A stretch of 64,000 bases of DNA, from contig NIVC01001630.1 of the NCBI GenBank assembly GCA_002269645.1, positions 193,331-257,330 of the forward strand, written 5' to 3'. A program made the position numbers and the translations under genes. The stretch comes from Macrostomum lignano (Eukaryota). Every line of letters starts with the position of its first letter. The stretch's first letter is position 1. The notes under the pieces are model-generated. The model did no database searches. It saw only the letters and a program-made list of their open reading frames with translations, and was not told the DNA's origin. This document shows, piece after piece, positions 2,311-49,590 of the stretch.

Positions 2311-2944
2311 ACCAGAGATTAGCTGGGCTAAAAGCAGGGCAATATTTTTACGCGAGAGATTTTCGATCGGCTTTTTAGGCGGGAAGAAGAAACACAAGCA
2401 GAAGCAGACAGACGGACAGCTGAACGCCAAACCCCGGATGCTTTGACAAGAAACACACAACCGGCGAGAGAGAACACCCAGAGAAAATCCAGCTGATAAA
2501 TTTGATTGCAATTGCAATATTCTCTCCCTTCGTATGTGTTTGGTTTGGCGAGCTGTCACGAAAACATGCTAAACATGTTCAGTTTCACGCAGCGGCTCAC
2601 CGCGCTTAGGCATATTATTGCCCTGGTTCTAGTCCAAGTACGAATATAAGAAGGTCCCTGACTAGACATTTTTTACATTTTTAGACGCCAGCAGATCTGG
2701 CTAAGATGTAAAACTGACTGTCGCTTCTCACATTTCAAAAAAATCGACCAAGAAGAAAGAAACAAGCCAGTGAAAGGTGCTTCAACAAATGCTACCATCC
2801 GTTGAGAGGGATGCATGAGCCGGGTTTAAAGTTCCGACTCAGCTGCCACGAAGTTGAAATATTTCTCTGATATGGAAGTTATATGTACTTTTTACTGATA
2901 GGGATTCTGATATTTTCTAAAACGCAGTAGATAGGCGCTATCAC

Positions 2945-4340: not shown

Positions 4341-4884
4341 TTATCTTTGTAATATATTTTCATAGTCCTACATGGCAGATCTCACTCCAATGCTCCCTTC
4401 AAATTCTACTAAAAAAATGTGAAACCCAGCCTGCATAAATCAACATAGATAACTATAATATATATAACAAGAAGGCGCAGCCTATACGAGATTAAGTACC
4501 AAAATCCCAAATTTACTTGAGCAAGAATATATGAGCAGGGAAATAAGTCTGGCGGATATGCTCAGCCAAATAAGCTTCGTAGTCAAGGCCGATAGGAAAA
4601 AAGGGCGACCAGCGCGGGGCAGTAAATTATTAATGACTCTTAATTGGGAGGCCTACTAGAAGAGGGCCGGAGCGGGCAGGCCAGAGTAAGAGCCTCAGTG
4701 CGGCTTCGCTTTTTTGCAAGCCAATTTTCCACCCTCTCGATCTTTGCACACACTGAAGCTTAGCCAGGAAACCACAAAGAAAAGAAGGGCAGCCACTTCG
4801 TTGGCATGGCTAATCCACAAAAAAATCTGGAAAAACATTACAACTCTTTTCTAGATGGCCAAGGGTAGAGATCTATTCGTCGAG

Positions 4885-5100
4885 CTTATGAGCGAGTTCA
4901 TGAGATTTTATGAGTAAGTTCAAGAGTGAGTTCATGAGTGAGTTCATGATTGAAGTCATGAGTGAGTTCATGCGTGAGTTCATGAGTGAGTTCATTATTG
5001 AAGTCATGAGTGAGTTCATGCGTGAGTTCATGAGTGAGTTCATAAGTGAGTTCATTAGTGAGTTCATGAGTGAGATTATGAGTGAGTTCATGATTGAGCT
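4885..5100 (+). repeat. 12-bp minisatellite (ATGAGTGAGTTC)n, family copy 1
   Basis: Same unit recurs at 38085-38610 (+) and 47200-47750 (-). Confidence 0.9.
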
Positions 5101-5542
5101 GCATATAAAAACGAACACACAGCTTGAAATGAGATGGGGTCAATGAGTGAGCAGGCATGTGAAGCTGACAGCTCAATGAAGCAAAAGGTTTCCCCAAGAC
5201 GTCTCACCCTCCCTAATTGGTGAGGGCTCACGATGCAGCCCTGTCAGGCCGCGTGAGCCCCGTCAGCATGAGCTGGGAGGCTCTAACAAAATGCGCGGCC
5301 CTCATTAGGGTCTGAAGGAAAAAGAATGAGATTGGGACCGACTCTGAATGGGATGCTGCAGATGAAGCTTTTAACAGTGGCCAGGGGCAGGGAAATTTTT
5401 TTTAGAAATCCTAGCCACCTTTTTACCAGGTGAGAAGGAAAGTTTTTCATGTCATTAAAATTTAATAGCAAGGCCGCACTTGCAGACAGAAACTTTCTGA
5501 CCCAGAAAAAATATATTAAATAGATCAGCAAAGTATCCTCAC

Positions 5543-8500
5543 ACTAGAACTGCATTGAAGTCGGCCAGCAGCTTCCGAGAATTCAATTCTAGCATCTCGA
5601 TTGACACTGAAATTGTTAGGATGATTGAGTGATGGTTTTTGAGTTGCCAGTGAGAATGGAAACATTGATATACTCGCTACTCTACCTGTGATTCACCGGT
5701 TATCTACTAGCTACTCTACCTGTGATTCACCTGTTATCTACTAGCTACTCTATCTGTGATTCACCGGCTATCTACTAGCTACTCTATCTGTGATTCACCT
5801 GTTATCTACTAGCTACTCTACCTGTGATTCACCGGTTATCTACTAGCTACTCTATCTGTGATTCACCGGCTATCTACTAGCTACTCTATCTGTGATTCAC
5901 CTGTTATCTACTAGCTACTCTACCTGTGATTCACCGGTTATCTACTAGCTACTCTATCTGTGATTCACCGGTTATCTACTAGCTACTCTACCTGTGATTC
6001 ACCGGTTATCTACTAGCTACTCTACCTGTGATTCACCGGTTATCTACTAGCTACTCTATCTGTGATTCACCGGTTATCTACTAGCTACTCTACCTGTGAT
6101 TCACCGGTTATCTACTAGCTACTCTACCTGTGATTCACCGGTTATCTACTAGCTACTCTACCTGTGATTCACCGGTTATCTACTAGCTACTCTACCTGTG
6201 ATTCACCGGTTATCTACTAGCTACTCTACCTGTGATTCACCTGTTATCTACTAGCTACTCTACCTGTGATTCACCTGTTATCTACTAGCTACTCTACCTG
6301 TGATTCACCGGTTATCTACTAGCTACTCTACCTGTGATTCACCGGTTATCTACTAGCTACTCTACCTGTGATTCACCGGTTATCTACTAGCTACTCTACC
6401 TGTGATTCACCTGTTATCTACTAGCTACTCTACCTGTGATTCACCTGTTATCTACTAGCTACTCTACCTGTGATTCACCGGTTATCTACTAGCTACTCTA
6501 CCTGTGATTCACCGGTTATCTACTAGCTACTCTACCTGTGATTCACCGGTTATCTACTAGCTACTCTACCTGTGATTCACCGGTTATCTACTAGCTACTC
6601 TACCTGTGATTCACCTGTTATCTACTAGCTACTCTACCTGTGATTCACCTGTTATCTACTAGCTACTCTACCTGTGATTCACCGGTTATCTACTAGCTAC
6701 TCTACCTGTGATTCACCGGTTATCTACTAGCTACTCTACCTGTGATTCACCGGTTATCTACTAGCTACTCTACCTGTGATTCACCTGTTATCTATTAGCT
6801 GCTGTGATCATTCTACAATATTCGAACACCCCATCTACCAGCCTTTTGCCAACCAACTTTAACCACTTTTATCTTTCGTTCTTCTTTTCTGTTTCGACCA
6901 GCAATGATTTATGAGCAAACTAAGGCCAAACCTAAACCAAATCTAACTCAAAAAACATAGGCAGAGGATGACTATATTGGTATATAATTTTGTTAAAATC
7001 GAAGTAAGATAAATTTATGCGAAACTTGGCCAAACCAGGCCAAAAAATATTGGGAGCTGCTATCAGGAACTTCTTTCTCTCGCACTGCTCTGTCTCTCTG
7101 TTCCCCTCCGGAACCCGGAATTCGATTTTATTAATCATACGCGACCCTCGACTTGACTGGGAAGCCAAGATCCGGGAGGTCCCGGGCAAAACCCGACTGT
7201 CGGAAGGAGAACTTAGTTTTAATAATTTGTATGACCAAAAAGTCCTCTTTGGCAGAAGATCGATTGCATTGCACGCTCAGCTCGAAAGGGGGGAAGGCAG
7301 ATCAGCGAGGGGAAACAAAAAAACTTTTTCCCCTATTTTTTGGTGCAAAACCAGTAAGAGCTGGGTGAGCTGAGGACACATGGAGAAGGGGGGGCGAGTG
7401 CTCGCTGAGGAACTTTTGAAACTTTTTCAAACCGTGCAAGTTTGTATTTTTCTAAACTATAGAAAGGACTCAAATTGTGCTTCAACTTAGCTCAGATTCG
7501 CCAATTTGTCGTGTTTTCTTCATTTTTATTTGATTTCGAATTGGGCACTCCTAGTTTGGAATTAAGAACTCTCTAGTTTTGAATTGGGCACTCCTATAGT
7601 TTGGAATTGGGCACTCCTAGTTTGGAATTGGGCACTCCTAGTTTGGAATTGGGCACTCCTAGTTTGGAATTGGGCACTCCTAGTTTGGAATTGGACACTC
7701 CTAGTTTGGAATTGGGCACTCCTAGTTTGGAATTGGGCACTCCTAGTTTGAAATTGGGCACTCCTATAGTTTGCAATTGGGCACTCCTAGTTTGGAATTG
7801 GGCACTCCTAGTTTGGAATTGGGCACTCCTATAGTTTGCAATTGGGCACTCCTAGTTTGGAATTGGGCACTCCTAGTTTGGAATTGGGCACTCCTAGTTT
7901 GGAATTGGGCACTCCTAGTTTGGAATTGGGCACTCCTAGTTTTGAATTGGGCACTCTATAGTTTATAATTGGACACTATAGTTTGGAATTGGGCATTCCT
8001 AGTTTGGAATTTGGCACTCTAGTTTGGAATTTGGCACTCCTAGTTTGGAATTTGGCACTCCTAGTTTGGAATTGGGCACTCCTAGTTTGGAATTTAGCAC
8101 TCCTATAGTTTGGAATTGGGCACTCCTAGTTTGGAATCGGGCACTCCTAGTTTGGAATTGGGCACTCCTAGTTTAGAATTGGGCACTCCTAGTTTGGAAT
8201 TGGGCACTCCTAGTTTGGAATTGGGCACTCCTAGTTTGGAATTGGGCACTCCTAGTTTGGAATTGGGCACTCCTATAGTTTGCAATTGGGCACTCCTAGT
8301 TTGAAATTTGGCACTCCTAGTTTGGAATTGGGCACTCCTAGTTTGGAATTGGGCACTCCTAGTTTTGGAATTTAGCACTCCTATAGTTTGGAATTGGGCA
8401 CTCCTAGTTTGGAATTGGGCACTCCTAGTTTGGAATTGGGCACTCCTAGTTTTGAATTGGGCACTCTCTAGTTTATAATTGGACACTATAGTTTGGAATT

Positions 8501-9359
8501 GGGCATTCCTAGTTTGGAATTTGGCACTCTAGTTTGGAATTTGGCACTTCTAGTTTGGAATTTAGCACTCCTATAGTTTGGAATTAGGCACTCCTAGTTT
8601 GGAATTGGGCACTCCTAGTTTGGAATTGGGCACTCCTAGTTTGGAATTGGGCACTCCTAGTTTGGAATTGGACACTCCTAGTTTGGAATTGGGCACTCCT
8701 AGTTTGGAATTGGGCACTCCTAGTTTTGGAATTGGGCACTCCTGGTTTGGAATTGGGCAGTCCTAGTTTTGGAATTGGGCAGTCCTAGTTTTGGAATTGG
8801 GCAGTCCTAGTTTTGGACTTGGGCACTCCTAGTTTTGGAATTGGGCACTCCTAGTTTTGGAATTGAGCACTCCTAGTTTGGAATTGGGCACTCCTAGTTT
8901 GGAATTGAACACTCCTAGTTTGGAACTGAGCACTCCTAGTTTGGAACTGAGCACTCCTAGTTTGGAATTGGGCACTCCTAGCTTGTAATTTAGCACTCCT
9001 TGTTTGGAAACAAGAATGGATTTCTATTGATTACTAATCGAAGGAAGCAAAAGCCACCAGGCTACGAACTCACCTCTGGGTGACGCCGGCAAACAATTTT
9101 GATGCCTTAAAATGCTTTGGTGTTGCAGCTGCTGCTGCTGCGGTATAGCCTTGTTATGCAGTACATTTGAGCAGTCGGACTCAACGTACCAACGCAATTC
9201 ACTCATCCATAGCCGAACCGAGTCCTCCGAAGCTGCCTGCCAAGCGCTGCTATTGATTGACGATGGCAGCGAATGACTGGACGAAACTGCCGAGCTCGAC
9301 GGGGTCGCCGACTTAGCCGGCCTCGACCTGACAGCCGGATCCGTCTTAACAGGATCCAT
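5543..9359 (-). CDS. INSC: Inscuteable homologue, 5' exons (gene continues toward lower coordinates; remaining exons not resolved)
   Basis: Exon 1 9359-9074 (ATG; donor G|GTGAGT) encodes SEDSVRLWMSELRWYVESDCSNVLHNKAI, matching from memory the Insc LGN/Pins-binding motif DSVQRWMEDLKLMTECECMCVLQAKPI. A phase-compatible probable exon 5606-5543 (TTTCAG acceptor) gives VSIEMLELNSRKLLADFNAVL. Confidence 0.75.
5676..6800. repeat. 34-bp minisatellite (CTACTCTACCTGTGATTCACCGGTTATCTACTAG)n
   Basis: About 33 highly homogeneous tandem units. Confidence 0.95.
7540..9005. repeat. 21-bp minisatellite (TTGGAATTGGGCACTCCTAGT)n
   Basis: Tandem periodicity; explains the ELGTPSL ORFs. Confidence 0.95.
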
Positions 9360-10125
9360 ATTGGTTGTTCTCGTCGGCGCAATGCCCAACATTGTTTTAT
9401 CAAACAGTGGTTTAAGTGCTTTGCTAATTGTTAGCTCGTTGCACAGAAGGCTGAGCTCCGTCGATCGTGATTGCCTCTCATTTCATTTTCGATAGTAGAG
9501 GTCTAATAACAATAAAGTTCTCTTTAGTTAACAGTAAGTACAAATATATGTGCACAAAACCATGGACTGTGCGCTGAGTGAGGGATTGAAACAATTGTAA
9601 AAATCCTGGCGTGCACACAACACTTCGATTTTGTCTGGGTCTTAGGGACGGTCTGGCCTAGCAATTTAATAATGGCATGCGTATGTATAGCGTTGCGTCG
9701 TTGGCTTGCGCAAGTTTCGCGTGCAAACATGCGTATAGTAGCTAGGGGGAGGCTAGATTTAAATCCTCGCCGTCTGAGGGAGAGGACATTGTGACTGGAG
9801 AGGGACAGAAGGGCAGACAGAGAGAGAGAACTTTCATTGGCTGACTGCGTTTCATGTCCAATCCTATGATCGCGTCGGGAATTTACTCACAAAAATTGGC
9901 GGCATTTGCATTTAGTACCATTAATTGATTGAAAATTTTCGCGATGCTACTAACTAGTAGCTTACGTAAGGAATCTGTTTATTTAATTTAAAAAAATCTA
10001 AGGATCTAAGCATTTAAGAAGCATTAAAAATTCTAAAAGTTTCTTCATGAGCGCAAAAATAGCAATAAACGTTTTAAAACTTATTTCTTTAAGCAGGTGT
10101 TCACGGTAATTCAAAGAGCTCTTAA

Positions 10126-13100
10126 TTACTCTTTGTGGATTCCTGCAGTTTTTGCTATCTCAGCATTCAATTTGGACTCGCTTCTGATCCCAGTTTGCTT
10201 CAGAAGTTCCGGGATGCTAGCCGCATTTAGTTGCTTCATCAGGCTTTCAATGCTTCTGATGTTTAGCTGTGCCATCAGATCAGAGACACTGCGAATATTA
10301 AGTTCAGACATCAGACTTTTGACACTTTTTAATCCAAGCGTGTGCAGAAGATCACTTAGTTTTGAGCTGCCCGTCTCAACAATCAGACTGGAGAGATTCG
10401 AAATATGAAACTGCTTCATCAGAGACGTAACATTGCAGATACCAGTCTGTTCCATGAAAGCCTTTAAAGTTGGAAGACCCACTTTACGAACGATTTGCCG
10501 TAGGTTCTTGGCGTCAAGTTGCTTCATTAGTCCTTGAACATCCGAAATTCCCAGCTGACTCATTAGACCTTGGAGATCAGGAATGCGTACTTGTTTCATC
10601 AAGCTCTTAAGGTTCTGAAGTCCGACCTCTCGTAATAGTTGGTGCAGACTCTTTGACCCCAGCTGGTCCATCAGCTTTGGAACGTCGGTAATGTTAAACT
10701 TGGTCATCAACTCTTTAAGATCGTCAAATCCAGCTTCCTTGATTAGAGCGCCCACTGTTCGTACACCGCAACGCTTCAGCAGTTGACGTAGGTTCTTGGC
10801 GTCGAGTTGCTTCATTAGTCCTTGAACATCAGAAATTCCCAGCTGACTCATTAGACCTTGGATATCAGGAATGCGTAATTGTTTCATCAAGCTCTTAAGG
10901 TTCTGAAGTCCGACCTCTCGTAATAGTTGGTGCAGACTCTTTGACCCCAGCTGGTCCATCAGCTTTGGAACGTCGGTAATGTTAAACTTGGTCATCAACT
11001 CTTTAAGATCGTCAAATCCAGCTTCCTCGATGAGAGCGCCCACTGTTCGTACACCGCAACGCTTCAGCAGTTGACGTAGGTTCTTGGCGTCGAGTTGCTT
11101 CATTAGTCCTTGAACATCAGAAATTCCCAGCTGACTCATTAGACCTTGGATATCAGGAATGCGTACTTGTTTCATCAAGCTCTTAAGGTTCTGAAGTCCG
11201 ACCTCTCGTAATAGTTGGTGCAGACTCTTTGACCCCAGCTGGTCCATCAGCTTTGGAACGTCGGTAATGTTAAACTTGGTCATCAACTCTTTAAGATCGT
11301 CAAAGCCAGCTTCCTTGATTAGAGCGCCCACTGTTCGTACACCGCAACGCTTCAGCAGTTGACGTAGGTTCTTGGCGTCGAGTTGATTTATGAGGTCTGT
11401 TAGAGATTTGATTTGTAGTTCGTGTCTCAGGCCACGCAAACTTTTTATTCCGAGTTGCTTTAAGAATGCCATTAGGTTTTTGGAACCCGTTTTTTTCATC
11501 AGTTGTGACAGCTTCTTTACATTTAACTCTTTCATTAGCCCATATACACCCTCAATTCTTGCCTGAGTTAATAAATCTGGAATGCTTGTCACACTTAGCG
11601 TTCGAACTAGATTATTGAGGTTTGGCGAGTTCAGCTTTTTCATCAAAGTGGCCAGGTTTTGAGCCTTAAGGCGTCGCATTAGGTCACGGAAGTTCAGCTG
11701 CTTTAGCTTCTGCTGAAGTGCAGAAAAGCTGGACACCTTCAGAGCATTCATCAGTGTTTCGATATTTCGGCCATTGGCAAGGTGCCTCAGTCCGGGGATT
11801 TTTTTCAGGGCATGTACACTCTTGAGAGGTTCCAAATATTTTGACAACTTGTCAGTTATTCTGTTGACTTTCTCGACGACTGGAATTCTGGATATCGCTT
11901 TTTTAATTAACCTATCGGCAGCTTTGATTTTCTTTAGTCCCGAAATTGATTTGATAACTTTGCGAACTTTTTTCTCCATTCTTCTGAGCTTCCGGAGTCC
12001 CGGAATCCTGTCCAACACTCCCGGGCCGTACTTGTCAACGAGTTTTCTCAGAACAGGGTTCCTGTTTACAATGCCTGTGATCTTGGCGTGTACACCTTTG
12101 ATTTTCGCAACAGCAGGCAGTGCGTTGAGCTTTGCAAAAACTTTTGTCTTTAACGCTGTAAGCTTTTTTACAATCGACAGGCTCTTCAAATTTGCAGCTA
12201 TTTTAGACTTTATTAAAAGAATCTTCTTTACTATCGGTACAGCCTTCAATTTTGTGATGATGAACGTCTTGGCTGCCACAAGCGGCTTTACAAACAGCGT
12301 CTTTGCAGCGGCAGCCGCGACAGCTTTGAATTTAACGACAGCAGCTGCGACAGCTTTGGCTTTAACAAAAGCGGCAGCGGCGGCTTTGACTAGGAATGGC
12401 ACAAAGAAAAATTTTTTTGGATGCCTTCGTGGTTTCTGAAATTATTATTAATAATTAACTCAATTAGTTGGGGTGAATAAATTTAGACAATCAGACAATA
12501 TAGCTGGTATCTCGTAAATGTATTACGTGTTATTCGATAACAACCAATATGAAAGCTAATGAGCGCTACGGTATCAAAAATGTACTATTGAGCGCATACA
12601 TGCGCAACCCCCCTGATTTACACTGGCCATGCGATTTAATTTTTGACCAAAAAATGCGACTTACCTGTGAAAGAAACCCTACAGCAACATTGACGCAAAT
12701 TTTGGGTAAACGGCAGGAGTAACTATAACTGTTCTTTAAGGGCTAAATGCCTCGTCATCTAATTAGTACTACGTCTGTATTCTTTGGGGTGGGCATTTTT
12801 GCAACTCCTGGTCCACCACAATTTACGGTGGCTAGATCGGCCAGGTCAGCCAGCAGTTGCGCATGTATGATTGAGCGTGAGCGTGTGTCTGAGTGCATGT
12901 CTGGCGCTTTGTATCAGGGTGACTACCAGCCCACTTGCAAACTTCTACTTGTCTTATGCCTTATTGATGTTTACTCACATCCAATTCTTGAGGTCCAACG
13001 TACGCGGGCAGATTGGCTGTCTGCAGAGCATCCTTAGACTCTCTGGCCTCCTCGACATCCAAATCTGTTGCTTGACAGGCGACTACAGCGAGCAGCAGTG

Positions 13101-13128
13101 CAAGGCCGCCGATAGATATTAAGCGCAT
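10126..13128 (-). CDS. Secreted prepro-protein A (~819 aa): signal peptide, acidic propiece, Lys-rich amphipathic region, ~45 x 12-aa helical repeats
   Basis: Exon 1 13128-12979: MRLISIGGLALLLAVVACQA TDLDVEEARESKDALQTANLPAYVGPQELD|GTGAGT. Exon 2 12435-10126 follows a TTTCAG acceptor, phase 0 (KPRRHPKKFFFVPFLVKAAA...), in frame with the 758-aa ORF. AATAAA on the minus strand at ~9978-9983. Confidence 0.85.
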
Positions 13129-13654
13129 GGCTTTCTTTTGGAGATTTTAGTAAATTGTTTAGCGATAGTTTTTGAAAATTTAATTTAATATTGAGTTTTG
13201 GGCGTTGCCTGATCAGTTCTTCGGGTTTTAATAGAAATGCCGCATCCGAGAGACCCCGCGAAGCCATCCACACGAAAATAGCAGGATATGACAGTATAAA
13301 ATGAATCCTTGATTTTTAGTTTCGCATTTTCGGTGATTCTCCTAAGCAGTGCATCGCCCCCCATCCAAGAGTGTCAAACCGTAATTCTGCAAATTTTCTG
13401 TCCTTGCTTTTTCATCTCCGTCATTTTTTACTCCAGGATTTGAAAAAACTAAAGAGCAATGAGAAAGACAGAGAGCTAACGATACAGTGCGTAATGTTTA
13501 AAAAAAGCAGATTTTTATAAAAGCTTTATTAATAAGTTGTGATAAAAAGTCCGAAAGTGGTATTTAAAATATTAAAACACACTACACTCATTGTATTAAT
13601 TTTCGTCCTCCAGGCCAAGAACAGATTATAGAAAATACCGATGTGACGACGTAC

Positions 13655-14125
13655 CTGGTGCTAAATCCACTGGTGGTAAATCAGCCTGGTGCTAAATCCC
13701 CTTGGTGCTAAATCCCCTGGTGCTAAATCCCCTTGGTGCTAAAGCCCCTGGTGCTAAAGCCCCTGGTGCTAAATCCCCTGGTGCTAAATCCCCTGGTGCT
13801 AAATCCCCTGGTGCTAAATCCCCTGGTGCTAAATCCCCTGGTGCTAAATCCCCTGGTGCTAAATCCCCTGGTGCTAAATCCCCTGGTGCTAAATCCCCTG
13901 GTGCTAAATCCCCTGATGCTAAAGCCCCTGGTGCTAAATCCCCTGGTGCTAAATCCCCTGGTGCTAAATCCCCTGGTGCTAAATCCCCTGGTGCTAAATC
14001 CCCTGGTGCTAAAGCCCCTGGTGCTAAATCCCCTGGTGCTAAATCCCCTGGTGCTAAAGCCCCTGGTGCTAAATCCCCTGGTGCTAAATCCCCTGGTGCT
14101 AAAGCCCCTTGTGCTAAAGCCTAAA
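13655..14125. repeat. 15-bp minisatellite (GCTAAATCCCCTGGT)n
   Basis: Tandem periodicity; explains the AKSPG/VLNPL ORFs. Confidence 0.95.
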
Positions 14126-14166
14126 GTGCTAAATGCTCTATGTCTCATAAAAAAACCTTTAAAATA

Positions 14167-15157
14167 CGGGTGTCCAAAAAGTAGTGATACTTTTAACCGT
14201 AGCTCTCGTTCTGTAGCTTCCTGTGATTTAAAATTTTATGAACTGATAGCGGAAAATCTCTTCTACAGACTGCTTTTTGAATTTTTAAAATTGATACTAG
14301 AGAACAAAAGTTATACCCACAAAAGTAACAGTACCTGTACTATAGAGTTACACAAATTATAGGCTGAGCTTCACGAGATCCATGCCGAGTAAGCTTCGAT
14401 GAATTGTTGATTTCGGCTTGTCCAACCTGTCAGCGATCTCTCTAATGGTCATTCGGGAGTCCTCGTCAAGAAGATTCAGAATGGAGTCCGCCAGTACATC
14501 AGGTCGATGAACGTATGGCCGCCCCGTCCAATGCTGATCTGCCAAGTCAATCCTTCCCTCGCTGAACTGCTCAATCCATCGATAAACTGTCATTTTGCTG
14601 ACCGCAGAGGATCCGTGCGCAGAGCAAAGTTTTGCGTGAATTTCTGAGGCACCATGGCCAGCGCCCCAAAGAGTGAAGATAGTACTTTGCTGAGCAACAA
14701 CTGAGTGCACATTCATGTGTGTTGTCGAGTATGGGCAATGAAATCATGAACGAATCGCAAAATGCAAGCGATCCTCTGTTTGCAAGTAAAGTAATGCATT
14801 TAATGCTTTATTTTTCTGCGCCTGATCCCGTCCATAGATAAATTTCAGTCAGTCACAGTGAGCATCATTTTGCAATTGGGCTTTGGTATTGCTTAAACAA
14901 GACATTTATCGATGCCTTCTTAATGAATGAGTGCAGAAGTCAACTATTATAAATTTCGATATAATTTGTGTAACTCTATGGTACAGGTACTGTTACTTTC
15001 GTGGGTATAACTTTTGTTCTCTAGTATCAATTTTAAAAATTCAAAAAGCAGTCTGTAGAAGAGATTTTCCGCTATCAGTTCATAAAATTTTAAATCACAG
15101 GAAGCTACAGAACGAGAGCTACGGTTAAAAGTATCACTACTTTTTGGACACCCCTCG
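14167..15157 (-). mobile_element. Non-autonomous Tc1/mariner element with ~195-198 bp inverted ends and TA target-site duplication
   Basis: 14167-14361 is the reverse complement of 14960-15157. The intact end reads TA-CGAGGGGTGTCCAAAAAG. TA at 14165-14166 and 15158-15159. Confidence 0.9.
14357..14716 (-). pseudogene. Truncated mariner transposase (paired HTH DNA-binding region only, no DD34D domain)
   Basis: ASEIHAKL..AHG..AVSKMTVYRWIEQF..G..DLAD..TGRP and DSRMTIREIADRLDKPKSTIHR..LGMDLVKL are mariner N-terminal motifs; the frame stops inside the left inverted repeat. Confidence 0.9.
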
Positions 15158-15631
15158 TACAAAATCTGAAACCTATCCGCTCTTGTTTGATATGTTTAGG
15201 CAGACACATTCTTTTGGAGGTAGAGTTAGTTATAAAACTTAGTCAGAGACCCTTTTTTATATTATACTGTTGAAATTTTGCTATATTTAGCTTTGCACTG
15301 AGTCAAAGGTACGTCATTGTCGATTGTACGTCATTGTGCACCAGAAAGGCTTTGAAGAAAGCGAAACGGATTCCCTTTTAGTGCCAGGAGCGCAAAATAT
15401 CAGCCCACTGCAGGACCCTAATAGAAGATTAAATCCGTCTTTTTCATAATTTCTTGCATCGCTCCGTGTTACAAAATCCTTGATTACTTAGCGAGCTCGG
15501 CCTTCTAAATTCATGAGATGCGCGCAAACGAGAGAAGAAGTATATATATAAACTAAAATATCGTCGATTTACGAGCTAATTTTCGTCCTTGTTATTTTTC
15601 TTCAAAAGATTGCTTACCTGCAAATTGAATC

Positions 15632-16606
15632 ATGCGCTTAAGGAGTCAAATATTTTTCGGAGTCTGTCTAGCTGTGTTGCTAGTGACTCAGGTCTGCTGC
15701 GACAGCGAGAAAAGTCATACTGACGATTTCGATGAGCAGCTGGCAGAGACGGCCAAAAGCTTGGTCGATAGCGAAATTGGTACCGCTGAAGATCCGTTTG
15801 CAGATTTCGATGTGAGTCTAAACCCTTGGAGTTTGTTGCCTCAAGAAGGCGGGTAGATGAGAGAGGAAAAGAGAGGGAATGAGGGAAGGAGAAGAAAGAT
15901 GAGATAAAATATGAGGGAGAGAGGGATGAGAGAAGGTGTTCACGGCTGTTCACTCCAAGGACTGGGGGGTCGCCACACACACCCTCAATTACCCAGCTAA
16001 TGCTGGCACCCATTTTACAGCTGGGTGAACTGAAGCAATGCAGAGTTAACTGTCTTGTTCAGTGACACAAATTGTTCCAGTGGGATTCGGGAATCGAACC
16101 CCCGACCTTCAAGTCTTTGACCACTAGGCTACAACCCTAGCTGCGACACGAGAGGAGAGGAGAGAAAAGGATAGCAAAGAGGAGAGATAAGATGAGAGAG
16201 GAGAGAAGGGATAAGATAGGAGAGAAGAGAGCTGAGAAGAGACACAAACCTCAATCGAACGGGCTTGCTATTGTAAAGTTTCAAAGGACCCGAGGACGGG
16301 ATAGAGAGGCTTCATGGGCAGCATGTGGACGTCGGGTCGGAGTTGTTAATCTTGTTCAATAGATTTCCGGACCAAAGCTAAAGTCTGAAGTTGAAAAAAA
16401 GTTCTAACTTCTGCGAGCATCTCTTATGTTTTTTGTCCCATTGTCCGACAAGTGACCGATTACATTCGGTCAGGGTCTTTACCTCGGGCTCTGTTTAGGA
16501 ACTTAAATTGACGTTCCCTTCTATAGTATCATTACAATACAAGCTATCTACTAAACTACAGGATGCGGAGAGGCTGACAAAGAAGTGGCAAGAAGTGGAC
16601 GAATAA
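15632..16606 (+). CDS. Secreted acidic prepro-peptide B (exon 1 firm, exon 2 tentative)
   Basis: Exon 1 15632-15811: MRLRSQIFFGVCLAVLLVTQVCC DSEKSHTDDFDEQLAETAKSLVDSEIGTAEDPFADFD|GTGAGT, phase 0. Candidate exon 2 16562-16606 (CTACAG acceptor) gives DAERLTKKWQEVDE* with AATAAA overlapping the stop. Confidence 0.6.
15940..16138 (-). mobile_element. tRNA-derived SINE with CORE-like domain
   Basis: Minus strand: A-box-like TAGCCTAGTGG (16131-16121), B-box GGTTCGATTCCC (16100-16089), then GAACAAGACAGTTAACTCTG...CAGCTGTAAAATGGGT resembling the CORE-SINE domain. Confidence 0.7.
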
Positions 16607-16849
16607 AGGACGGTTCGGCAAAATGAATAACTTTTCAATATTAAAGTTGTTTGCTGTTTCAAAATCAGTGAAACATCGGCGCGAATTTTTGCTAAATAAC
16701 ATCTGATAAATTTGTAATTATTATAAATATATAGTCTCGATAGGTCAGTTTTCTTCTAACTAAAGGCTGTTGGATTGTCGATTTTTTATTTTAAATTTCT
16801 GCTACATGTAGCCATCTACCTGTAAATGTGGGTATCTCTATGTTACTCT

Positions 16850-17420
16850 TTCCCTCAGATTTCTCAGATCTCCCTCAGATCTCCCTCAGATCTCCCTCAG
16901 ATCTCCCTCAGATCTCCCTCAGATCTCCCCGAGATATCCCTCACATTCCCTCAGATTCCCTCAGATCTCCATCAGATCTCCCTCAGATCTCCCTCAGATC
17001 TTCCTCAGATCTCCCTCAGATCTCCCTCAGATCTCCCTCAGATCTCCCTCAGATCTCCCTCAGATCTCCCTCAGATCTCCCTCAGATCTCCCTCAGATCT
17101 CCCTCAGATCTCCTTCAGATCTCCCTCAGATCTCCCTCAGATCTCCCTCAGATCTCCCTCAGATCTCCCTCAGATCTCCCTCAGATCTCCCTCAGATCTT
17201 CCTCAGATCTCCCTCAGATATCCCTCAGATCTCCCTCAGATCTCCCTCAGATCTCCCTCAGATCTCCCTCAGATCTCCCTCAGATCTCCCTCAGATCTCC
17301 CTCAGATCTTCCTCAGATCTCCCTCAGATCTCCCTCAGATCTTCCTCAGATCTCCCTCAGATCTTCCTCAGATCTCCCTCAGATCTCCTTCAGAACTCTA
17401 AAATCTCCCTCAGATCTCCC
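16850..17420. repeat. 11-bp minisatellite (CAGATCTCCCT)n
   Basis: Tandem periodicity. Confidence 0.95.
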
Positions 17421-17464
17421 AAAGAGGAACCCTCTTCCCTGGCCTTCTCCGAGTGCCTTCCAAG

Positions 17465-17615
17465 TGACATTTGACTGTCAGTGACACTTGACTATCAGTG
17501 ACATTTGACTGTCAGTGACACTTGACTATCAGTGACATTTGACTGTCAGTGACACTTGACTATCAGTGACATTTGACTGTCAGTGACACTTGACTATCAG
17601 TGACATTTGACTGTA
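17465..17615. repeat. 17-bp dimer repeat (CAGTGACACTTGACTAT/CAGTGACATTTGACTGT)
   Basis: Two 17-mers alternate. Confidence 0.85.
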
Positions 17616-18247
17616 CAGATTTCTAAATCTGTACCTGCAGGGGGTCGAGTCCTCATATGCGACACTAATAAACAGCGCTAAAATTTCACTCAAATGATGA
17701 AAAAATCACTGAAAAAACTTAGGAGACAATATATAGGAGCTGATCAGAGAATATAGCGCTCGATATTCTCTGGAGCTGATTGACGGCTGTCTGATCGCAA
17801 ATTAATCTATTTCTACCATAGATTGCTCAAAGTACGTATTAAATTAGCGTCTCAAAGCCATTTCCCTTAGCTTCAACTTGCTTCATTTTTGCTACCCAAA
17901 ACCAACACAAATTAAAAGCATCTGCACAACACGGATCTTCTAGCAAACTTCAAACCTGGATTTGGATGAGTTAGTAGTTTATTTTGCTTGTGATTTTTCC
18001 AACCGGAGACAGCTGAACTAATAAATCATGGATGCTTTTCATCACAATATTTTCTTGTCTACAATTTCAGTGATCCTATTGTCTTTGTTTTGCTGCACAG
18101 TTTTTATTCTCTGAATATTCATTTTACATTGTGCCGAAGGGCGTAGACTATCAATGGCCAGTATGAGCTAGTTTAGCTAGCAGGTTAAACGATCTATTAG
18201 GGGGAGGGGCGAAAGAGACTGAGATATAAGAGCAGGGAGACACACAC

Positions 18248-18251
<4 letters not shown>

Positions 18252-18311
<60 letters not shown>
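18252..18311. repeat. (AG)n microsatellite
   Basis: Direct. Confidence 0.95.
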
Positions 18312-18316
<5 letters not shown>

Positions 18317-18639
18317 GGAGTGATATTATTCACATATGCTAAATATTTAATTTACTATCTATACGCTACTATCACGATATGATATCCTCTGCCGTAATAC
18401 ATGTTGCAAAGTTATAGCAATTCTATCGTGATTAAGGTTATGAGAAGTCTTATTTGAAAAAAGTAATAGCTCTTATTTAACTACCCATGGAGTAGCTAAT
18501 ACATGAGAATAGTTTATTTTTTGTATACGAGTGTACTATCAATTTTTCAATCAACTATATTTTTTATGGAAAACGGGTCTGATCAACTGGTTAAACGTAT
18601 ATCAAAGTTTTGTAAACGAAAGTTTTTTTTTGTTTTTTC

Positions 18640-19310
18640 TTATTCCAACTCGCCAAAATCGTTGCCACCCTCAATCTGTGGTATCGGGCCGGGCGGCGGT
18701 GGCGGCCTATTCGGCGTCGTAGCTGGCGGCGGCGACTCAGTAGTAACGCGCTGCGTTGTTGGCGGACGGGCTGTTGTCAAAGATGCTCGAGTAGTTTTAG
18801 GTGTCGGTGGAACCATAGTCTTCCTTGATCTTCCGTTCCGGCGCCATCCTCCCCAGTGGCGTCGCCAGGGTCGTCCCCAACGGCCGCGACCTCGACCCCA
18901 GATCGGCCGACGTCGATTCCACCCATATCGTTTAAAAACCCGCTTGATTTGTTTTGCTGCACGCCGAATCCTTCTGAATCGGGACTGTTTCTCCGCTTGA
19001 TCGATTTCCTGTTTGTTTATTTTTTGGTATCGTTATTTTATGTAGACATGAACTAGCGAAATTCAAAACAACGAGTCGGTCGCAAAAAAACTTACGTCAT
19101 CTTCTCCATCTTCGTGGTCGTTAGGAAGGCTTTCCTCAGCTGAAGAATCTTGACTTTCAGTGGCTTCCTCTTCACTGTTAATATCGTCGATGGCTTCAGC
19201 TAGTTGATGGTCTTCACGCTCTGCAGGGTCATCGTGGTAGCGGACGGCGCTACCTGTTGCTAGTGGCAGCAGCTTGGCGGTAAGAAGCGCTGCATGGCAA
19301 GAAATCGCAT
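18640..19310 (-). CDS. Secreted prepro-protein C: acidic propiece, Arg/Trp-rich cationic peptide, Thr/Pro stalk (1-nt frameshift in the signal peptide as assembled)
   Basis: Exon 1 19310-19096: MRFLA(fs)AALLTAKLLPLATG SAVRYHDDPAEREDHQLAEAIDDINSEEE...EDGEDD|GTAAGT. Exon 2 19008-18640 (AACAG acceptor, phase 0): EIDQAEKQSR FRRIRRAAKQIKRVFKRYGWNRRRPIWGRGRGRWGRPWRRHWGGWRRNGRSRK TMVPPTPKTT...ELE*. Confidence 0.75.
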
Positions 19311-19867
19311 ATTTTTGTATTTTCTACCGGCTGTAAAGAAGAGAAAGTATCAGAAATTAACTCGGCTCCGAGATACAGCTTAAGCGAAAATTTATTTTAA
19401 AAAGATTTCTTTTCGAATTCCCGGATTTTCATACTCAATGAAGTCCTGGATATGCAGAGCCAACAGTTGTTTTGAATTGGCGAGTCACTACTAATAGCAT
19501 CATAAAGTTTTTTTTCCGAAAAAATTTCAAACAGAATGAACGAGGCATAAGATGCATCTGCAGTCAAGCTCAAGTATCACCTGTGTGTATTCCAATGTTT
19601 TACTCTTAATAGACACCTCAATAGTCGTAGCGCGAGACTAAATAGTAGAAAAAAAAGTGAGGATTAAGGCTGGCGCATTTTGCTCTTAAGTCTTTCTCGT
19701 TTTCAAAGTTCTTAGAACCGCGTATGCGAAAATATTGTCATTTCAGCTTTTTTATTTCAGTCGGACAATCGAAAATAATACGACACCAGAAACCAAGAGA
19801 TTTAAAGAGTTAAGTTAGATTTTGACTTAAGACTTTTACGACGCTTTTCTCGCTGAAGGCAGCTAGG

Positions 19868-21760
19868 TTAGAATGTGCACAGAGTCTTGACAGATCGGCA
19901 GCAACCACTCTGACACTGTCCGCAGTAGGTCTTAGCGTTTCCAAGGTCATTATTGTCTCGCAGGTACTTGATATAGTCCTTCCATCCTGTGCACGTGTCG
20001 CCCCAGGAGTCACCCCAGAAGCAGCTCTCGTCGGCTTCGGGAGCGGAGGTGTCGCTAGCGCACTGGCCGTCCCAGTTGCAGCTCTTCTTGTTGCCGCAGG
20101 GTGTGCCAACGGGGGCCCGGAGACCGCCGCCAGTCACTCCGCTTGAAGAGCCGGCGGTCGGTGTGCAGAAGATCTTGGCGCAGATCAGTGCCGGATTAGA
20201 AGAGACGTCATCAGTGAGGAAGAACTTGCCCGGACTGGATGGATAGGCGAGGCGACACACCTGGTCCAGGGTCATGCGACCACCTTCGCGAGTCGTTGTA
20301 GCCACAGAGGAGTCTGGAGAGCCTTGACGCGACTTCAAGCACTCGGCCTTGCCTAATAAGTTGTAAATTTTATAACTATTTGTAATTTTTCAATAATTTT
20401 GCAAAAAGCCTGTATGTTAGATCAAGGACCACTATGAACACTAGGAACAAGTCTAGTAGTCCTTGTGTTAGATTTGTGCTGCGTACCTGTAGCCAGATAG
20501 TTTTTCATGAAGGTCACTGTGCAGGGAGAAAACCTATACGAGTTGGCGACGTCGCTAAGGGAGTATGACCCCGCAGAAGGCGACATTAGGAACTTGTAAG
20601 CCACTTTGCACGCCGGTTGGTCATTGTCGTGATCGGATCCCATGTTGTGGGCCAGCTCGTGAGACGCTGTGCCCCAGCTTTGCAAGCCCTGGTCCTCATT
20701 GATGCTAACTCGCGTGTCCTGACAGGCGCCTCCAACGTAAGCCATGCCGCACACTGCGGTGTTGCCGCCACTCTGGATATCCGTGCGCGTAAACGCCATC
20801 ACGTGATCGGCAGTCTTGCCAACGGCGTAAGACTTGATGTAGCCGAGGATTGCACTGGCGTCGGTTGCTGTTCAGTAGCGGATTGAGGAAGTGATAATTT
20901 AATAGATTTAGCTATTTCAGAATTATTAGCAAAATTTATCGTACTTACCGTCAGACGAACCAGCTGGAGGCATCCATTGCGAATCAGCCTGCGTCTTTGC
21001 CACGGTGAGGCCGGTGCACTTGACACTCATAGACGGGTTTCCGACGTTTCTGAACGCTGTATCGATTCCGTTCAAAATGTGCGTGTAATAATAGTGAAGC
21101 TCTGTCATAGCTGCAGCATCAGTGCTGTAAATTGTCTTAAACGCGTTCCACACAGTGTGGTCCAGAAGCAAAAGGAGCTCCACCTCAAGATCTGTAGCAG
21201 CTTGATTGGACTGACGCTTCTTGCGGCTCATTACTTGCATGACCTTCGACTTGTCAATCTGCGACTCAATACCGTCTGGCTGGGCAATGTTGCGTGTGAC
21301 TTGATGCTCTGAAGCACCGCTTGGCTTGACGAAATAGGATGTACCTTCGTGCATCACGTGACCGCTGAAGCGTTTCTTTCCCTTCTCGTGTCGAACACTG
21401 ATGACAGACTTGCTCTCGATGTCCCTGTAGTGAGCGTGACTCGCGTGGTGAGCTTGGCGAGCTGAAAAAGTCCTGGAGACTCCATTCTCTCTCACGGTCA
21501 TTGGCACACTCTCAAAGGCGTCAGTCTTTTCCAATGGAATGCGGACCTTCTTGTTCGTGCTGGGCAGCTGTACTTCGATCTCCATAGACGAAGGATGCGG
21601 TCCATCGTTGCTGGATCGAGTCACAGACACTGAAGCCTGGGCCGCAGCAACAGCGAGCAGAAATATGACTGCAAAATTGATAGATAATTACGCTGAAAAC
21701 TTGCTTCGATGTTTGTTGTGACACATGAATGATAAATCACTACTTACCAAGGCGCAGCAT
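19868..21760 (-). CDS. Secreted M12B (ADAM/ADAMTS-like reprolysin) zinc metalloprotease, copy 1
   Basis: Exons 21760-21748, 21668-20949, 20867-20487 and 20352-19868, all with phase-1 GT-AG introns. Signal MLRLVIFLLAVAAAQA, furin site SRKKR, HELAHNMGSDHD zinc motif, LMSP Met-turn, ADAM Cys-rich domain (TLDQVCR...CGNKKSCNWDGQC), Cys-rich tail. Confidence 0.9.
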
Positions 21761-23862: not shown

Positions 23863-24325
23863 TTAAGCCCATTCAATTAGAACTTTATAGCAATACAATC
23901 CGAACTAAAAGTTTTTGTACAATCAATTCTATCCAATCAATTTAATACAGCGTTTGTTGGTAAGTTTCGATAACAATACATGCATGCTCTCCAATAAATG
24001 TTTCGTTTAATCGTAGATTAACTTCATTCAGATACAGCCCAGAATAGCACTAACACAACTAACTAGTCCTACAAGCAACATGCGCTCAAGGACAACTATG
24101 TATGTTAGTTAAGTAGTCCTTGCATGCGCTGCGGCAGCTTTATAATTAATAAATTGCCACAATATTTTTACCAAAACAGACACGCCTTGACTGATTAGTC
24201 TTTCTTTTTATGCATTTATTCTCCTCTTTTGTATTTTTCTATCCGGTATGTTTCTATTAACGATGTAATAATCTCTATCTTCCGCTTCAGTGCCCGCACA
24301 CGCGGCAGCGAACCAAAGAAAACCG

Positions 24326-26317
24326 ATGAAAATGCTGAAAATAGGTGAGTTAACCACAGAACATACAGAAGCTCTGTGGAGTCAACTGCATATGCTTCAG
24401 GAAATTAATTACGTATGTTTACGAGTCGTACGTGCTCAATATTTTAGCTATATTTCTGGCCGTCTCTGCGGCAGCCCAGGCCTCGGTGTCCGTGACGCAA
24501 TCCAGCGGTGACGGACCTCACCCGTCCTCCATGGAGATCGAGCTCCAGCTGCCCGACACCGACAAGAAAGTCCGCATCCCGCTGACCAAGACTGCTCCGT
24601 TGGATGGCGCTGTGGTCACTGTGACGGACGGTGGAGTCTCCAGGACGTTCTCTGGCCGACAAGCTCAACACGGAGATCAAGCTCACTACAGAAACGTTGA
24701 TAGCAAGTCAGTGATCAGCGTTCGACACGAGAACGGCACAAAGCGCATCAGCGGTCACGTGATGCACGAAGGCACCTCGTATGTCATCCAGCCGATCGGC
24801 GACTCTGGGCACCGCGTCTCCAAAACCAGCGAAACCGCGGATGAGCCGCAGCCCGAGCAGTTGCTGAGTCGCAAGAAACGCCGAGTGAACCGAGAGGCTA
24901 CCGAATACGAAGTTGAGATCCACATCCTCATTGATCACACCGTTTGGAAGGCTTTCAAGACAATTTTCGGTACAGATGAAGAAGCCCTGACTGAGCTGCA
25001 CTTCTACTATTCTCACATTGTGATTGGCATGGACACGGTCTTCAGGAACATCGGCAGTCCGTCAATCAGTGTCAGGTGCATTGGGTTAACAGTAGCCAAG
25101 ACTGAAGCCGATGCAAAGTGGATGCCACCGGATAGCTCGGCTGATGGTACGCGCTTTAGTGCGCTTTTGTCTTACTTGACATACCTGAATTAGCTGCAGG
25201 GGGTTCTGGGCGTCCGGAAACAGCGAAAAGGCGTTGAGAGAGTAGTAATTTGAATAATGTGTAATTTAAAAACTATTTCAGCGTTGAAGTGTTCTCTCAA
25301 ACAGATTTTTTAGCAAGCGATGGTGGTGCCACTCTCGGCAGAATCCGAGCGTACTCGAAAGGCGACAGAGCCGATCACGTGATGGGCTTCACCCGGAGAG
25401 ATATTTCGCTAGGCAAGAACTCTGCGGTGACAGGAGTCGCTTTTGAAAATAGCGCCTGCCAAGAGACGAAGGTCAGCGTTGTCGAAGATTCCGGCCTCCA
25501 CAGCTGGATGACGGCCGCGCACGAGCTCGCGCACAACTTGGGGGCCAGTCACGATAATAACGAACCCGGATGCGAAATGGATCTGAAGTTCATAATGTCG
25601 CCTGCCGCTACATCCTACGATCTCAGCAACATAGCCAATTCCTACCGGTTCTCTCCGTGCACAGTGGGGCAGATCAGGACCTATCTCGACTCCGGTAAGT
25701 TTTTCGCGTTTCTTTGAGTTGTTTTATTTCTAAGGAATTGTCTAATTTGGAAATCAGAGCTTTTCTTAAGCTTTGACGCAAAGAAGTGAAAAACATTGAT
25801 ACGTCAAAAATATTTGAATGCCTAACCAGGAAAAGCAGCGTGTCTGCAGTCTCGTCAAGGCACCCCCGTCAGCCAACTGACAAGCTCTGTCCGCGAAGGA
25901 GCTCGCATGTCCCTCGATCAGGTGTGCCGTCTCAATTACCCATCGAGTCCCGGCAATATTTTCTTGACGGAGGACGTTAAAGCAAACCCGGCTCTGATGT
26001 GCGCCAAAATGCACTGCCTCTTGAAGGCCGACCACGCACACGGAACAACTAGCACCGGCTTCCGCGCCCCAGTCGGGTCGCCCTGCGGCAACAAGAAGAG
26101 CTGCAATTGGGACGGCCAGTGCGTTGCCGACGAAGCAGCACCCGCTGCAGACGAAAGCTGCTTCTTTGGCGACATATGGGGCGACCAATGTGGGGGGTGG
26201 AAAACCTACATCGAGTACCTGCGCAACACGGATCAAAAATCTCAACGCAGGAGCTACTGCGGCCAGACGCAAACGAATTGTTGCGCTAGTCTCAAGAATT
26301 TGTGTCGGTTTGATTAA
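24326..26317 (+). CDS. Secreted M12B (ADAM/ADAMTS-like reprolysin) zinc metalloprotease, copy 2
   Basis: Exons 24326-24344, 24448-25146, 25314-25694 and 25830-26317, same intron positions as copy 1. Signal MKMLKIAIFLAVSAAAQA, SRKKRR, HELAHNLGASHD, IMSP, ADAM Cys-rich domain; AATAAA at ~26468. Confidence 0.9.
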
Positions 26318-29580: not shown

Positions 29581-29727
29581 TTTTCAAATTAAAATCCTTT
29601 TTCCTGAACTGGTAGTTTTCGCCATTGTCCACCCCACTAAGGAGATAAATTGATGTTAAAAAGCTGTACTTTTTCACATATTGCCTAATATATGTATGCG
29701 AAAATATAACAGTTATATCCATAATTC

Positions 29728-46518: not shown

Positions 46519-46925
<407 letters not shown>

Positions 46926-49319: not shown

Positions 49320-49590
<271 letters not shown>

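Follow-up and report, generated by a model that had tools for sequence, protein, structure and literature searches.

Do three neighbouring genes that begin alike and end differently form one family, in which a conserved prepro exon is joined to interchangeable payload exons? The question is raised by genes A, B and C of Macrostomum lignano, located in a window of 64,000 nucleotides (64 kb, the whole stretch of DNA analysed; GenBank NIVC01001630.1, assembly Mlig_3_7), with an Inscuteable-like gene on one side and a pair of M12B metalloprotease genes on the other. A sequence-only reading had proposed such a family. We would answer that genes A, B and C are probably three independent, lineage-restricted secretory-protein genes, each with a signal peptide and an acidic stretch in exon 1, a phase-0 intron, and the remainder in exon 2, and that what they have in common is an ordinary secretory gene design. 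The main value of the analysis is this correction, from a striking three-gene family to a common layout without detectable homology, with one of the three genes disrupted in the window.

Layout of the three genes

The layout itself (signal peptide and acidic exon 1, phase-0 intron after an Asp codon) is real. ATGs and following codons, read directly, give the proposed starts MRL at 13128(-) for gene A, MRL at 15632(+) for gene B, and MRF at 19310(-) for gene C (CGC TTA, CGC TTA, and CGA TTT after the ATG, respectively). All three donors (3/3) were likewise found in phase 0 directly after an Asp codon, with a slash marking the exon end: GAT/GTGAGT, GAT/GTGAGT, and GAC/GTAAGT. Exon 1 reads MRLISIGGLALLLAVVACQATDLDVEEARESKDALQTANLPAYVGPQELD/GTGAGT in gene A and MRLRSQIFFGVCLAVLLVTQVCCDSEKSHTDDFDEQLAETAKSLVDSEIGTAEDPFADFD/GTGAGT in gene B. 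Feature coordinates are listed in Table 1.

Table 1 Features of genes A, B, and C and of the intervening mobile element; positions are those of the window.
Feature	Positions	Strand	Description
Gene A exon 1	12979..13128	-	50 codons; signal peptide MRLISIGGLALLLAVVACQA and 30-residue acidic spacer; GAT, then donor GTGAGT (12978-12973)
Gene A intron	12436..12978	-	543 nt, GTGAGT...TTTCAG, phase 0
Gene A exon 2	10126..12435	-	769 codons and stop; starts KPRRHPKK
Three near-identical 288-bp units within gene A exon 2	10495..11385	-	Each 8 x 12 residues; 98% matches, no indels
Non-autonomous mariner-like element	14166..15159		Between genes A and B; ~195 bp inverted ends, TA flanks
Gene B exon 1	15632..15811	+	60 codons; signal peptide MRLRSQIFFGVCLAVLLVTQVCC and acidic stretch; GAT, then donor GTGAGT; annotated CDS start
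Gene B exon 2	16562..16606	+	DAERLTKKWQEVDE and stop
Gene C exon 2	18640..19008	-	Begins EIDQAEKQSRFRRIRR; Arg/Trp/Gly-rich cationic stretch, then Pro/Thr-rich tail and stop; net charge +22
Gene C exon 1	19098..19310	-	Frameshifted in window; ATG 19310-19308; acidic ORF ends GAC, then donor GTAAGT (19097-19092)

Signal peptides were called by hydrophobicity rules only (Kyte-Doolittle); the hydrophobic core of genes A and B has a mean Kyte-Doolittle value of ~3.1. Both strands of the whole 64 kb were searched for ORFs that start at an ATG, span 30-100 codons, are hydrophobic at the N-terminus, and have a phase-0 GT[AG]AGT donor, and genes A and B alone combined these features (observed 2 versus a mean of 0.33 in 100 block shuffles). 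The two stand head to head at a distance of 2.5 kb and have the start ATGCGCTTAA as well as the donor GAT/GTGAGT in common. In each gene the ER signal peptide, with a short stretch of acidic residues, would come from the first coding exon and the rest from the second. The two-exon architecture and the signal peptide with acidic propiece in exon 1, both claimed earlier for all three genes, stand for gene A (on its dN/dS of 0.15, below) and gene B (identical to the GenBank CDS); for gene C they fail in the window, where the ATG is out of frame, and appear only in a paralogous copy, at one of two paralogous loci (L002, intact; L003, frameshifted). Gene B is annotated, gene A is unannotated, and gene C is both frameshifted in the window and unannotated.

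Genes A and B

Judged by its pattern of substitution, gene A is a genuine two-exon gene, with a signal peptide and an acidic stretch in exon 1, and is clearly under purifying selection. Its dN/dS of 0.15 against a paralogous locus (32 synonymous, 16 non-synonymous changes) compares with 1.19 and 5.15 in wrong-frame controls; the synonymous excess has a binomial P of 3e-10, or 3e-9 without the duplicates from repeated units. The exon 1 protein is 100% identical in L002 and L003 (4 synonymous, 0 non-synonymous changes); exon 2 has a dN/dS of 0.17 against L003, and its synonymous excess holds also upstream of the first in-frame Met. The intron differs from that of L003 by 13 substitutions, 0 of them at splice sites, and the exon 2 reading frame opens just 2 codons upstream of the acceptor.

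Exon 2 consists of ~64 consecutive 12-residue units in one strict register, with a net charge of +85 and a pI of 10.5; between the window and L003 the same substitutions reappear at 288-bp offsets. The predicted product is a very large polycationic protein of ~64 twelve-residue helical repeats, with a KPRR site at the exon junction. An AlphaFold2 single-sequence model of exon 2 contained short helices throughout, with a period of ~12 residues, at poor confidence (mean pLDDT 44.8, pTM 0.21); a PDB sequence search with gene A gave no match.

No orthologue of gene A was found among 1.84 billion representative proteins in an exhaustive search with exon 2. The relatives that it has in the database are all bacterial proteins made up of runs of LxxLxxxLGxxx-type 12-residue units, to which the same Pfam model is matched (PF03448, MgtE_N); over the C-terminal 458 residues of exon 2 this model scored 56.4 bits (E 4.6e-15; cut-off 25.9), with no single stretch passing the cut-off alone and a separate query giving 32.3 bits. 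Gene A differs from these bacterial repeat proteins in that it is eukaryotic, has a signal peptide, and is strongly cationic, and it is without an Mg2+ transporter module. Database matches to exon 2 reach E values down to 2e-27 at an identity of 14-35%, driven by periodicity. The high-scoring ones were rejected as evidence of orthology, as an unrelated vertebrate protein that repeats GVPDLAGVASRL is among them; with such a 12-residue-repeat protein among the top matches, periodicity evidently inflates the scores, and common descent with MgtE_N proteins is therefore not shown.

Gene A would accordingly be described as an 819-codon gene that is clearly under purifying selection, is missing from public M. 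lignano annotations, and specifies an unusual protein of ~64 perfectly phased repeats. Gene annotation in M. lignano is transcriptome-guided (PMC5730564) and has no call for genes A and C at any of the three loci; in addition, 1 bp is deleted from a T run in gene A of L003, 9 codons into exon 2. Both observations were counted against the reading of three independent genes.

Gene B is real and has two exons. Its spliced product of 74 aa is exactly PAA65661.1 (BOX15_Mlig004062g2), by which the junction is confirmed; its exon structure is that of the transcriptome-guided GenBank CDS, and the length of the annotated gene, 975 bp, is in exact agreement. The stop codon is overlapped by an AATAAA at 16602-16607. 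Its paralogues correspond to PAA78315.1 and PAA68515.1, and none of the three copies is disrupted. The mature product is wholly acidic (net charge -13) and includes no basic payload; gene B would encode a small secreted peptide, acidic throughout. A literature search found no mention of Mlig004062 or PAA65661.1, an uncharacterised hypothetical protein. A word-index protein search returned no relatives of gene B and missed even its own entry, PAA65661.1; the search is therefore weak for short proteins, and its lack of a hit carries little weight.

Gene C and its frameshift

In the window, the ATG of gene C and the acidic region are in different frames. Translation from the ATG gives MRFLAMQRFLPPSCCH and a stop; the acidic frame (+2) has no ATG from the upstream TAG to the donor, and ends ...HEDGEDD (GAC)/GTAAGT. 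An additional A is present in L002 between window positions 19294 and 19293; with it, ATG, signal peptide, and acidic region fall into one frame, so that the intact gene reads MRFVAIAALLAAALLPLATG/SAVRYHDD...; L003 has the same deletion as the window. The window copy, whose signal peptide is interrupted by this 1-bp frameshift, is most probably a pseudogene. Gene C is situated ~560 bp downstream of a metalloprotease stop codon.

The L002 copy has the layout of a cationic peptide precursor, and resembles the charge-balanced design of such precursors: a signal peptide, a balancing anionic propiece (net charge -17; exon 2, +20), and between them and the product a basic cleavage motif, RFRRIRR, 10-17 residues past the junction. 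In the precursor that it may encode, RFRRIRR and then a cationic part rich in Arg and Trp come after the anionic propiece. At this locus we infer secretion, convertase cleavage at RR, and charge neutralisation by the acidic stretch, as we do any biological role. As a candidate precursor of a cationic peptide that only one of the three paralogous loci keeps intact, gene C is an example of early gene loss following the recent genome duplication of M. lignano.

Two alternatives bear on this description. The first, possible but doubtful, is that gene C is no gene, being a chance two-part ORF in GC-rich DNA and possibly part of the 3' region of the metalloprotease gene. Exon 2 has a dN/dS of 1.26 against L002 (5 synonymous, 19 non-synonymous changes), indistinguishable from neutral, and gene C, evolving as if neutral, may be non-functional in all of its copies; it is also unannotated in three loci, without homologues in protein database searches, frameshifted in two of three copies, and accompanied by a 165-codon ORF on the strand opposite exon 2. 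Against this, the L002 copy combines a textbook signal peptide, a GTAAGT donor, a polypyrimidine-AG acceptor, an 89-nt intron, and a near-exact balance of acidic and basic charge, and the two exonic indels versus L002 other than the frameshift (3-nt and 12-nt) are multiples of three and in frame.

The second, which we regard as unlikely, is that the frameshifts (gene C in the window and L003; gene A in L003) are PacBio assembly errors, left by short-read polishing that is unreliable in triplicated regions, and that all copies are intact. The assembly was made with Canu on PacBio reads and polished with Pilon; the genome holds 180 Mb of blocks at least 95% identical (PMC5730564), which was counted in favour of this explanation, and the indel of gene A in L003 sits in an A7T5 homopolymer context. 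The deletion in gene C, however, is outside any homopolymer (GCCAT[A]GCAG), and recurs in two copies that were assembled separately and have substitutions close by in common.

Relationship of the first exons and comparison with known systems

Under the proposal of one Macrostomum family, genes A, B, and C would derive from a single signal and acidic-propiece exon joined via a phase-0 intron to unrelated payload exons. That the second exons are unrelated, as had been noted, is correct. In favour are the layout seen in all three (MR[L/F] start, acidic tail, phase-0 donor after Asp) and the position of genes A and B, head to head and the sole two such exons in 64 kb, with ATGCGCTTAA and GAT/GTGAGT in common. 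The first exons themselves nevertheless align no better than composition-matched shuffles: p was 0.19-0.75 for A-B and 0.39-0.82 for B-C, and for A-C 0.01-0.02 with the frameshifted copy of gene C and 0.13 with the intact one, so that with intact C all pairs lie at 0.13-0.82. The QLAE motif described as common to genes B and C is present in both (DEQLAETAKS, DHQLAEAIDD), but the B-C alignment that includes it is not above chance. Exon-1 similarity no better than that of random acidic, signal-bearing sequences had been named in advance as a result that would refute the family, and this is the result obtained with the shuffles. Nor did the 900-bp 5' regions of the three genes show significant DNA similarity (blastn, best E 0.12).

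Each of the three paralogous loci has the same exons paired, so that no shuffling is seen, and no further exon 1 with another payload was found in the 64-kb window or in protein databases, where searches with genes A, B, and C returned no relatives with other C-termini (the word-index search being weak for short proteins). The lack of a basic payload in gene B also argues against the proposal. With exon-1 similarity at shuffle level, a family with swappable payload exons is not supported, and we consider it improbable. The shared ATGCGCTTAA and GAT/GTGAGT of genes A and B, together with the phase-0 introns after Asp of all three, give a hint of very old common ancestry. Splicing of gene C exon 1 to gene A exon 2, suggested earlier, found no support: the two exons are separated by gene B, which is on the opposite strand, and gene C is provided with a conserved acceptor and an exon 2 of its own.

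Three independent genes of ordinary secretory design, in which a separate 5' exon holds the signal sequence and an acidic spacer precedes a basic product, remain the preferred reading, and they may be set beside known systems. In the semenogelin/WFDC/SPINT locus, of the rapidly evolving, seminal-vesicle-transcribed type, homology rests on exon 1 and a third, untranslated exon (sequence, size) and on a phase-1 acceptor (PMC3209443). As there, the present genes are clustered secretory genes with a small exon 1 for the signal peptide and first product residues, and an exon 2 that is unrelated and fast-evolving or repeat-expanded. Unlike there, they have two exons rather than three, phase-0 introns, and an exon 1 that is not conserved, and assignment to a locus of semenogelin/WFDC type, with its conserved exon 1, 3' untranslated exon, and phase-1 acceptor, was rejected.

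Amphibian dermaseptin-type precursors, conotoxin superfamilies, and mammalian defensins have recognisably conserved signal or pro sequences among paralogues, most with Cys frameworks or short mature peptides. The genes here resemble them, most clearly in gene C and at the KPRR junction of gene A, by combining a signal peptide and acidic propiece with a basic processing site and a cationic product. The prepro sequences of genes A, B, and C, in contrast, are not alignable, the product of gene A is a 769-residue repeat protein, and gene B is without a cationic product.

Two further proposals were considered. That the locus is the local remnant of a Macrostomum-specific system, in which a signal and acidic phase-0 exon was recombined with unrelated second exons, giving among others the giant polycation A and the divergent polyanion B as a secreted charge pair that might serve in the packing of gland granules or in reversible adhesion, is very improbable. 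Also very improbable is a functional pair of secreted polycation (A, +85) and small polyanion (B, -13), for example in granule packing, coacervation, or reversible adhesion: the head-to-head arrangement and opposite charges, and the proposal that adhesion in M. lignano depends on a polycationic protein which is set free by a small, as yet unidentified molecule of negative charge (PMC6410801), were counted for it, and the low protein density of the releasing vesicles (PMC6410801), together with the unrelatedness of gene A to Mlig-ap1 and Mlig-ap2 as described there, against it.

Rfam and tRNA scans of the window gave no matches. The mariner-like element between genes A and B, missing from both paralogous loci, carries a remnant transposase HTH ORF at 14357-14716 (-).

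Layout common to A, B and C

Three putative secreted-protein genes (A, B and C), each with an exon 1 for a signal peptide and acidic stretch and an exon 2 for the remainder, had been read as a family with a shared prepro exon and interchangeable payload exons; the observation was partly confirmed and the interpretation partly supported. The ATGs, the MRL/MRL/MRF starts, the acidic stretches, the QLAE motif and the phase-0 donors after Asp (GAT/GTGAGT, GAT/GTGAGT and GAC/GTAAGT in A, B and C, respectively) are all present in the window. Across the whole window, in either orientation, A and B alone combine an ATG ORF of 30-100 codons, a hydrophobic N-terminus and a phase-0 GT[AG]AGT donor (expectation from block shuffles, 0.33).

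A conserved prepro exon was not borne out, exon-1 alignments failing to rise above shuffles, the outcome that the sequence-only reading had set as refuting. Local alignments of the window exons against composition-matched shuffles gave p 0.19-0.71 for A-B, 0.39-0.42 for B-C and 0.01-0.02 for A-C; when the intact C was used and residues were shuffled within the signal part and within the acidic part, all pairs had p > 0.1. The search of each exon against the window by tBLASTn returned the self-match and no further member. When the 900-bp 5' regions of the three were compared by blastn, the best match had E 0.12; ATGCGCTTAA, common to A and B, is an 11-mer with E 2.4. The remaining common features (MR[L/F] at the start, signal peptide, acidic stretch, phase-0 intron following Asp) fit very old shared ancestry and, equally well, ordinary secretory-gene design.

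The signal-acidic-basic logic is that of dermaseptin-type, conotoxin and defensin precursors, but these families are defined by conserved prepro sequences, and no such conservation was found among A, B and C. Among described systems, the mammalian semenogelin/WFDC/SPINT locus comes closest. Genes there were judged homologous though their products are unrelated, since they share a signal-peptide exon and a 3' untranslated exon, both conserved, as well as a phase-1 acceptor (PMC3209443); none of the features behind that homology is found in A, B and C.

Coordinates of features in the window (for NIVC01001630.1, assembly GCA_002269645.1, Mlig_3_7, add 193330)
Feature	Position	Strand	Remarks
Inscuteable-like gene, first coding exon	9024-9392	-	immediately downstream of A
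A exon 2	12435-10126	-	769 codons
A intron		-	543 nt, GTGAGT...TTTCAG, between exon 1 and exon 2
A exon 1	13128-12979	-	sequence reading
Mariner-like element	14166-15159		between A and B
Gene B	15632-16606	+	GenBank annotation, 74 residues
SINE-like element	15960-16130		in B intron, reverse orientation
Candidate gene C	18640-19310	-	exon 1 to 19098, exon 2 from 19008
C, ATG	19310	-	candidate
AATAAA, region	19311-19400	-	about 80 nt upstream of C ATG
M12B metalloprotease gene	19868-21760	-	532 residues
M12B metalloprotease gene	24293-26317	+	542 residues, head to head with the preceding
Metalloprotease ORF	24432-25193		
RhoGEF gene, start	28397	-	
Signal-peptide ORF	61481-61843	+	120 codons
Minisatellites	1-2400, 13654-14118, 16851-17614, 28500-29600, 38000-40300, 41100-42600		units 11-60 bp
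Minisatellites, further	44000-45400, 46500-47800, 49300-50700, 53900-54800, 56170-58900		units 11-60 bp

Genes B and A in a triplicated segment

The segment carrying Insc, A, B, C and the metalloprotease pair is present in three copies in the assembly (window; L002, on NIVC01000695.1; L003, on NIVC01001390.1) with 91-99% identity and identical gene order and exon pairings, in keeping with the DV1 line having become polyploid recently. Duplicated blocks of at least 95% identity make up about 180 Mb of the M. lignano genome (PMC5730564). The copies differ in that C is frameshifted in the window and L003, by a 1-bp deletion common to both, and A in L003.

For B the proposed two-exon model proved correct, its span being exactly that of the annotated gene. 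The spliced product (60 residues from exon 1, DAERLTKKWQEVDE from exon 2) reproduces PAA65661.1 exactly (hypothetical protein BOX15_Mlig004062g2) and the unspliced 74-residue read-through ORF was not found in the database, so the model rests on transcript data; gene annotation of Mlig_3_7 was RNA-seq-guided (StringTie, TACO, TBONE, TransDecoder; PMC5730564). Mature B has 51 residues with a net charge of -13 and lacks a basic payload. Copies g1 and g3 are intact at the two paralogous loci, with splice sites conserved; the copies differ by one synonymous and three non-synonymous codon changes, too few for measuring selection. The SINE-like element in the intron is tRNA-derived, has GA-rich microsatellites on its flanks and occurs in each of the three copies; neither ARAGORN nor Rfam made a call for it.

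The annotations of NIVC01001630.1 and L003 do not include gene A, a word-index search gave no match, and an orthologue was not found among 1.84 billion representative proteins. Between window and L003 there are 32 synonymous and 16 non-synonymous changes (dN/dS 0.15; wrong-frame controls 1.19 and 5.15), a synonymous excess with a binomial probability of 3e-10, or 3e-9 without changes recurring at 288-bp offsets. All four changes in exon 1 are synonymous. The exon-2 reading frame opens just two codons ahead of the acceptor. The synonymous excess extends to the 152 codons before the first exon-2 Met, which supports the splice. L003 lacks 1 bp of a T run (window 12411) that lies nine codons downstream of the start of exon 2; this loss either arose very recently or reflects a mistake in the assembly.

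The exon-2 product keeps a single unbroken 12-residue register over about 64 units (hydrophobic autocorrelation 0.53-0.59 at lags 12, 24 and 36), is basic (141 K+R vs 56 D+E, pI 10.5, N-terminal KPRRHPKK) and includes three 288-bp units, 98% identical. A single-sequence structure model gave all short helices and is unreliable (pLDDT 44.8). Exon 2 scores above the cut-off for Pfam MgtE_N. All of its relatives are bacterial proteins in which 12-residue helical units occur in runs and which also match MgtE_N; descent from these is not inferred because periodicity inflates match scores. As a gene that is under selective constraint, is missing from the annotation and encodes an unusual repeat protein, A is of some value.

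The components proposed for adhesion in M. lignano are a polycationic protein and, for release, a small anionic factor, the releasing vesicles being reported as protein-poor (PMC6410801). Since the divergently oriented A and B would supply a polycation and a polyanion, a functional link to adhesion is conceivable, though speculative.

Candidate gene C

The single reading frame proposed from the ATG of C fails in the window, where a stop follows 16 codons (MRFLAMQRFLPPSCCH) and the acidic stretch belongs to the +2 frame, which has no ATG. C was reconstructed by aligning the window with both paralogous loci. L002 has one extra A, at window 19294/19293 (GCCATAGCAG vs GCCATGCAG), giving an uninterrupted MRFVAIAALLAAALLPLATG/SAVRYHDDPAEREYHQLAEAIDD...GEDD/GTAAGT, an 89-nt intron and then EIDQAEKQSRFRRIRRAAKQIKRVFKRYGWNRRRPIWGRGRGRWGR..., with a Pro/Thr-rich tail at the end. 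This intact precursor, with a propiece of net charge -17 and a second exon of +20, has the same design as cationic peptide precursors.

The window copy is probably a pseudogene, and C may still be functional in L002. That the frameshift is an assembly error is a real alternative, Mlig_3_7 having been assembled from PacBio reads by Canu with Pilon polishing (PMC5730564); the deletion recurs in two loci. The remaining two exonic indels are of 3 and 12 nt. Equally to be reckoned with is that C is no gene at all: none is called in the annotation of any of the three loci, a homologue search found none, and the five synonymous and 19 non-synonymous changes between L002 and window (dN/dS 1.26) are indistinguishable from neutrality. 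As a frameshifted candidate cationic-peptide gene, C is of some value.

Twenty nt ahead of the C ATG there is a strong polypyrimidine-AG (TTCTCTTCTTTACAG). Both it and the AATAAA share the strand of the metalloprotease gene and lie about 560 nt past its stop codon, an arrangement that would be compatible with spliced-leader trans-splicing of a downstream cistron.

Neighbouring genes, elements and repeats

The Inscuteable-like gene encodes 604 residues with Pfam Insc_C per annotation. The mariner-like element is non-autonomous: its ends are inverted over about 195 bp and flanked by TA, and 119 codons of the transposase HTH region remain. Both paralogous loci lack precisely this element, hence a recent, copy-specific insertion. 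The two M12B (reprolysin/ADAM-like) genes are members of a family with multiple copies in M. lignano (14 database relatives, 53-99% identity); the metalloprotease ORF matches a Macrostomum lignano protein at NCBI with 99% identity. The GenBank locus of that protein agrees with window 14293-36317 at 100% identity, and a second locus is identical over 5632-26606, which places the window in NIVC01001630.1. Minisatellites are exceptionally dense, several lying inside the RhoGEF gene, and give rise to long spurious ORFs on either strand and in more than one frame. The signal-peptide ORF (MMKLILLLLLCYTLKISFA, strong signal) is a candidate for another secreted-protein exon, its Cys pattern being suggestive of a PAN/apple-like module.
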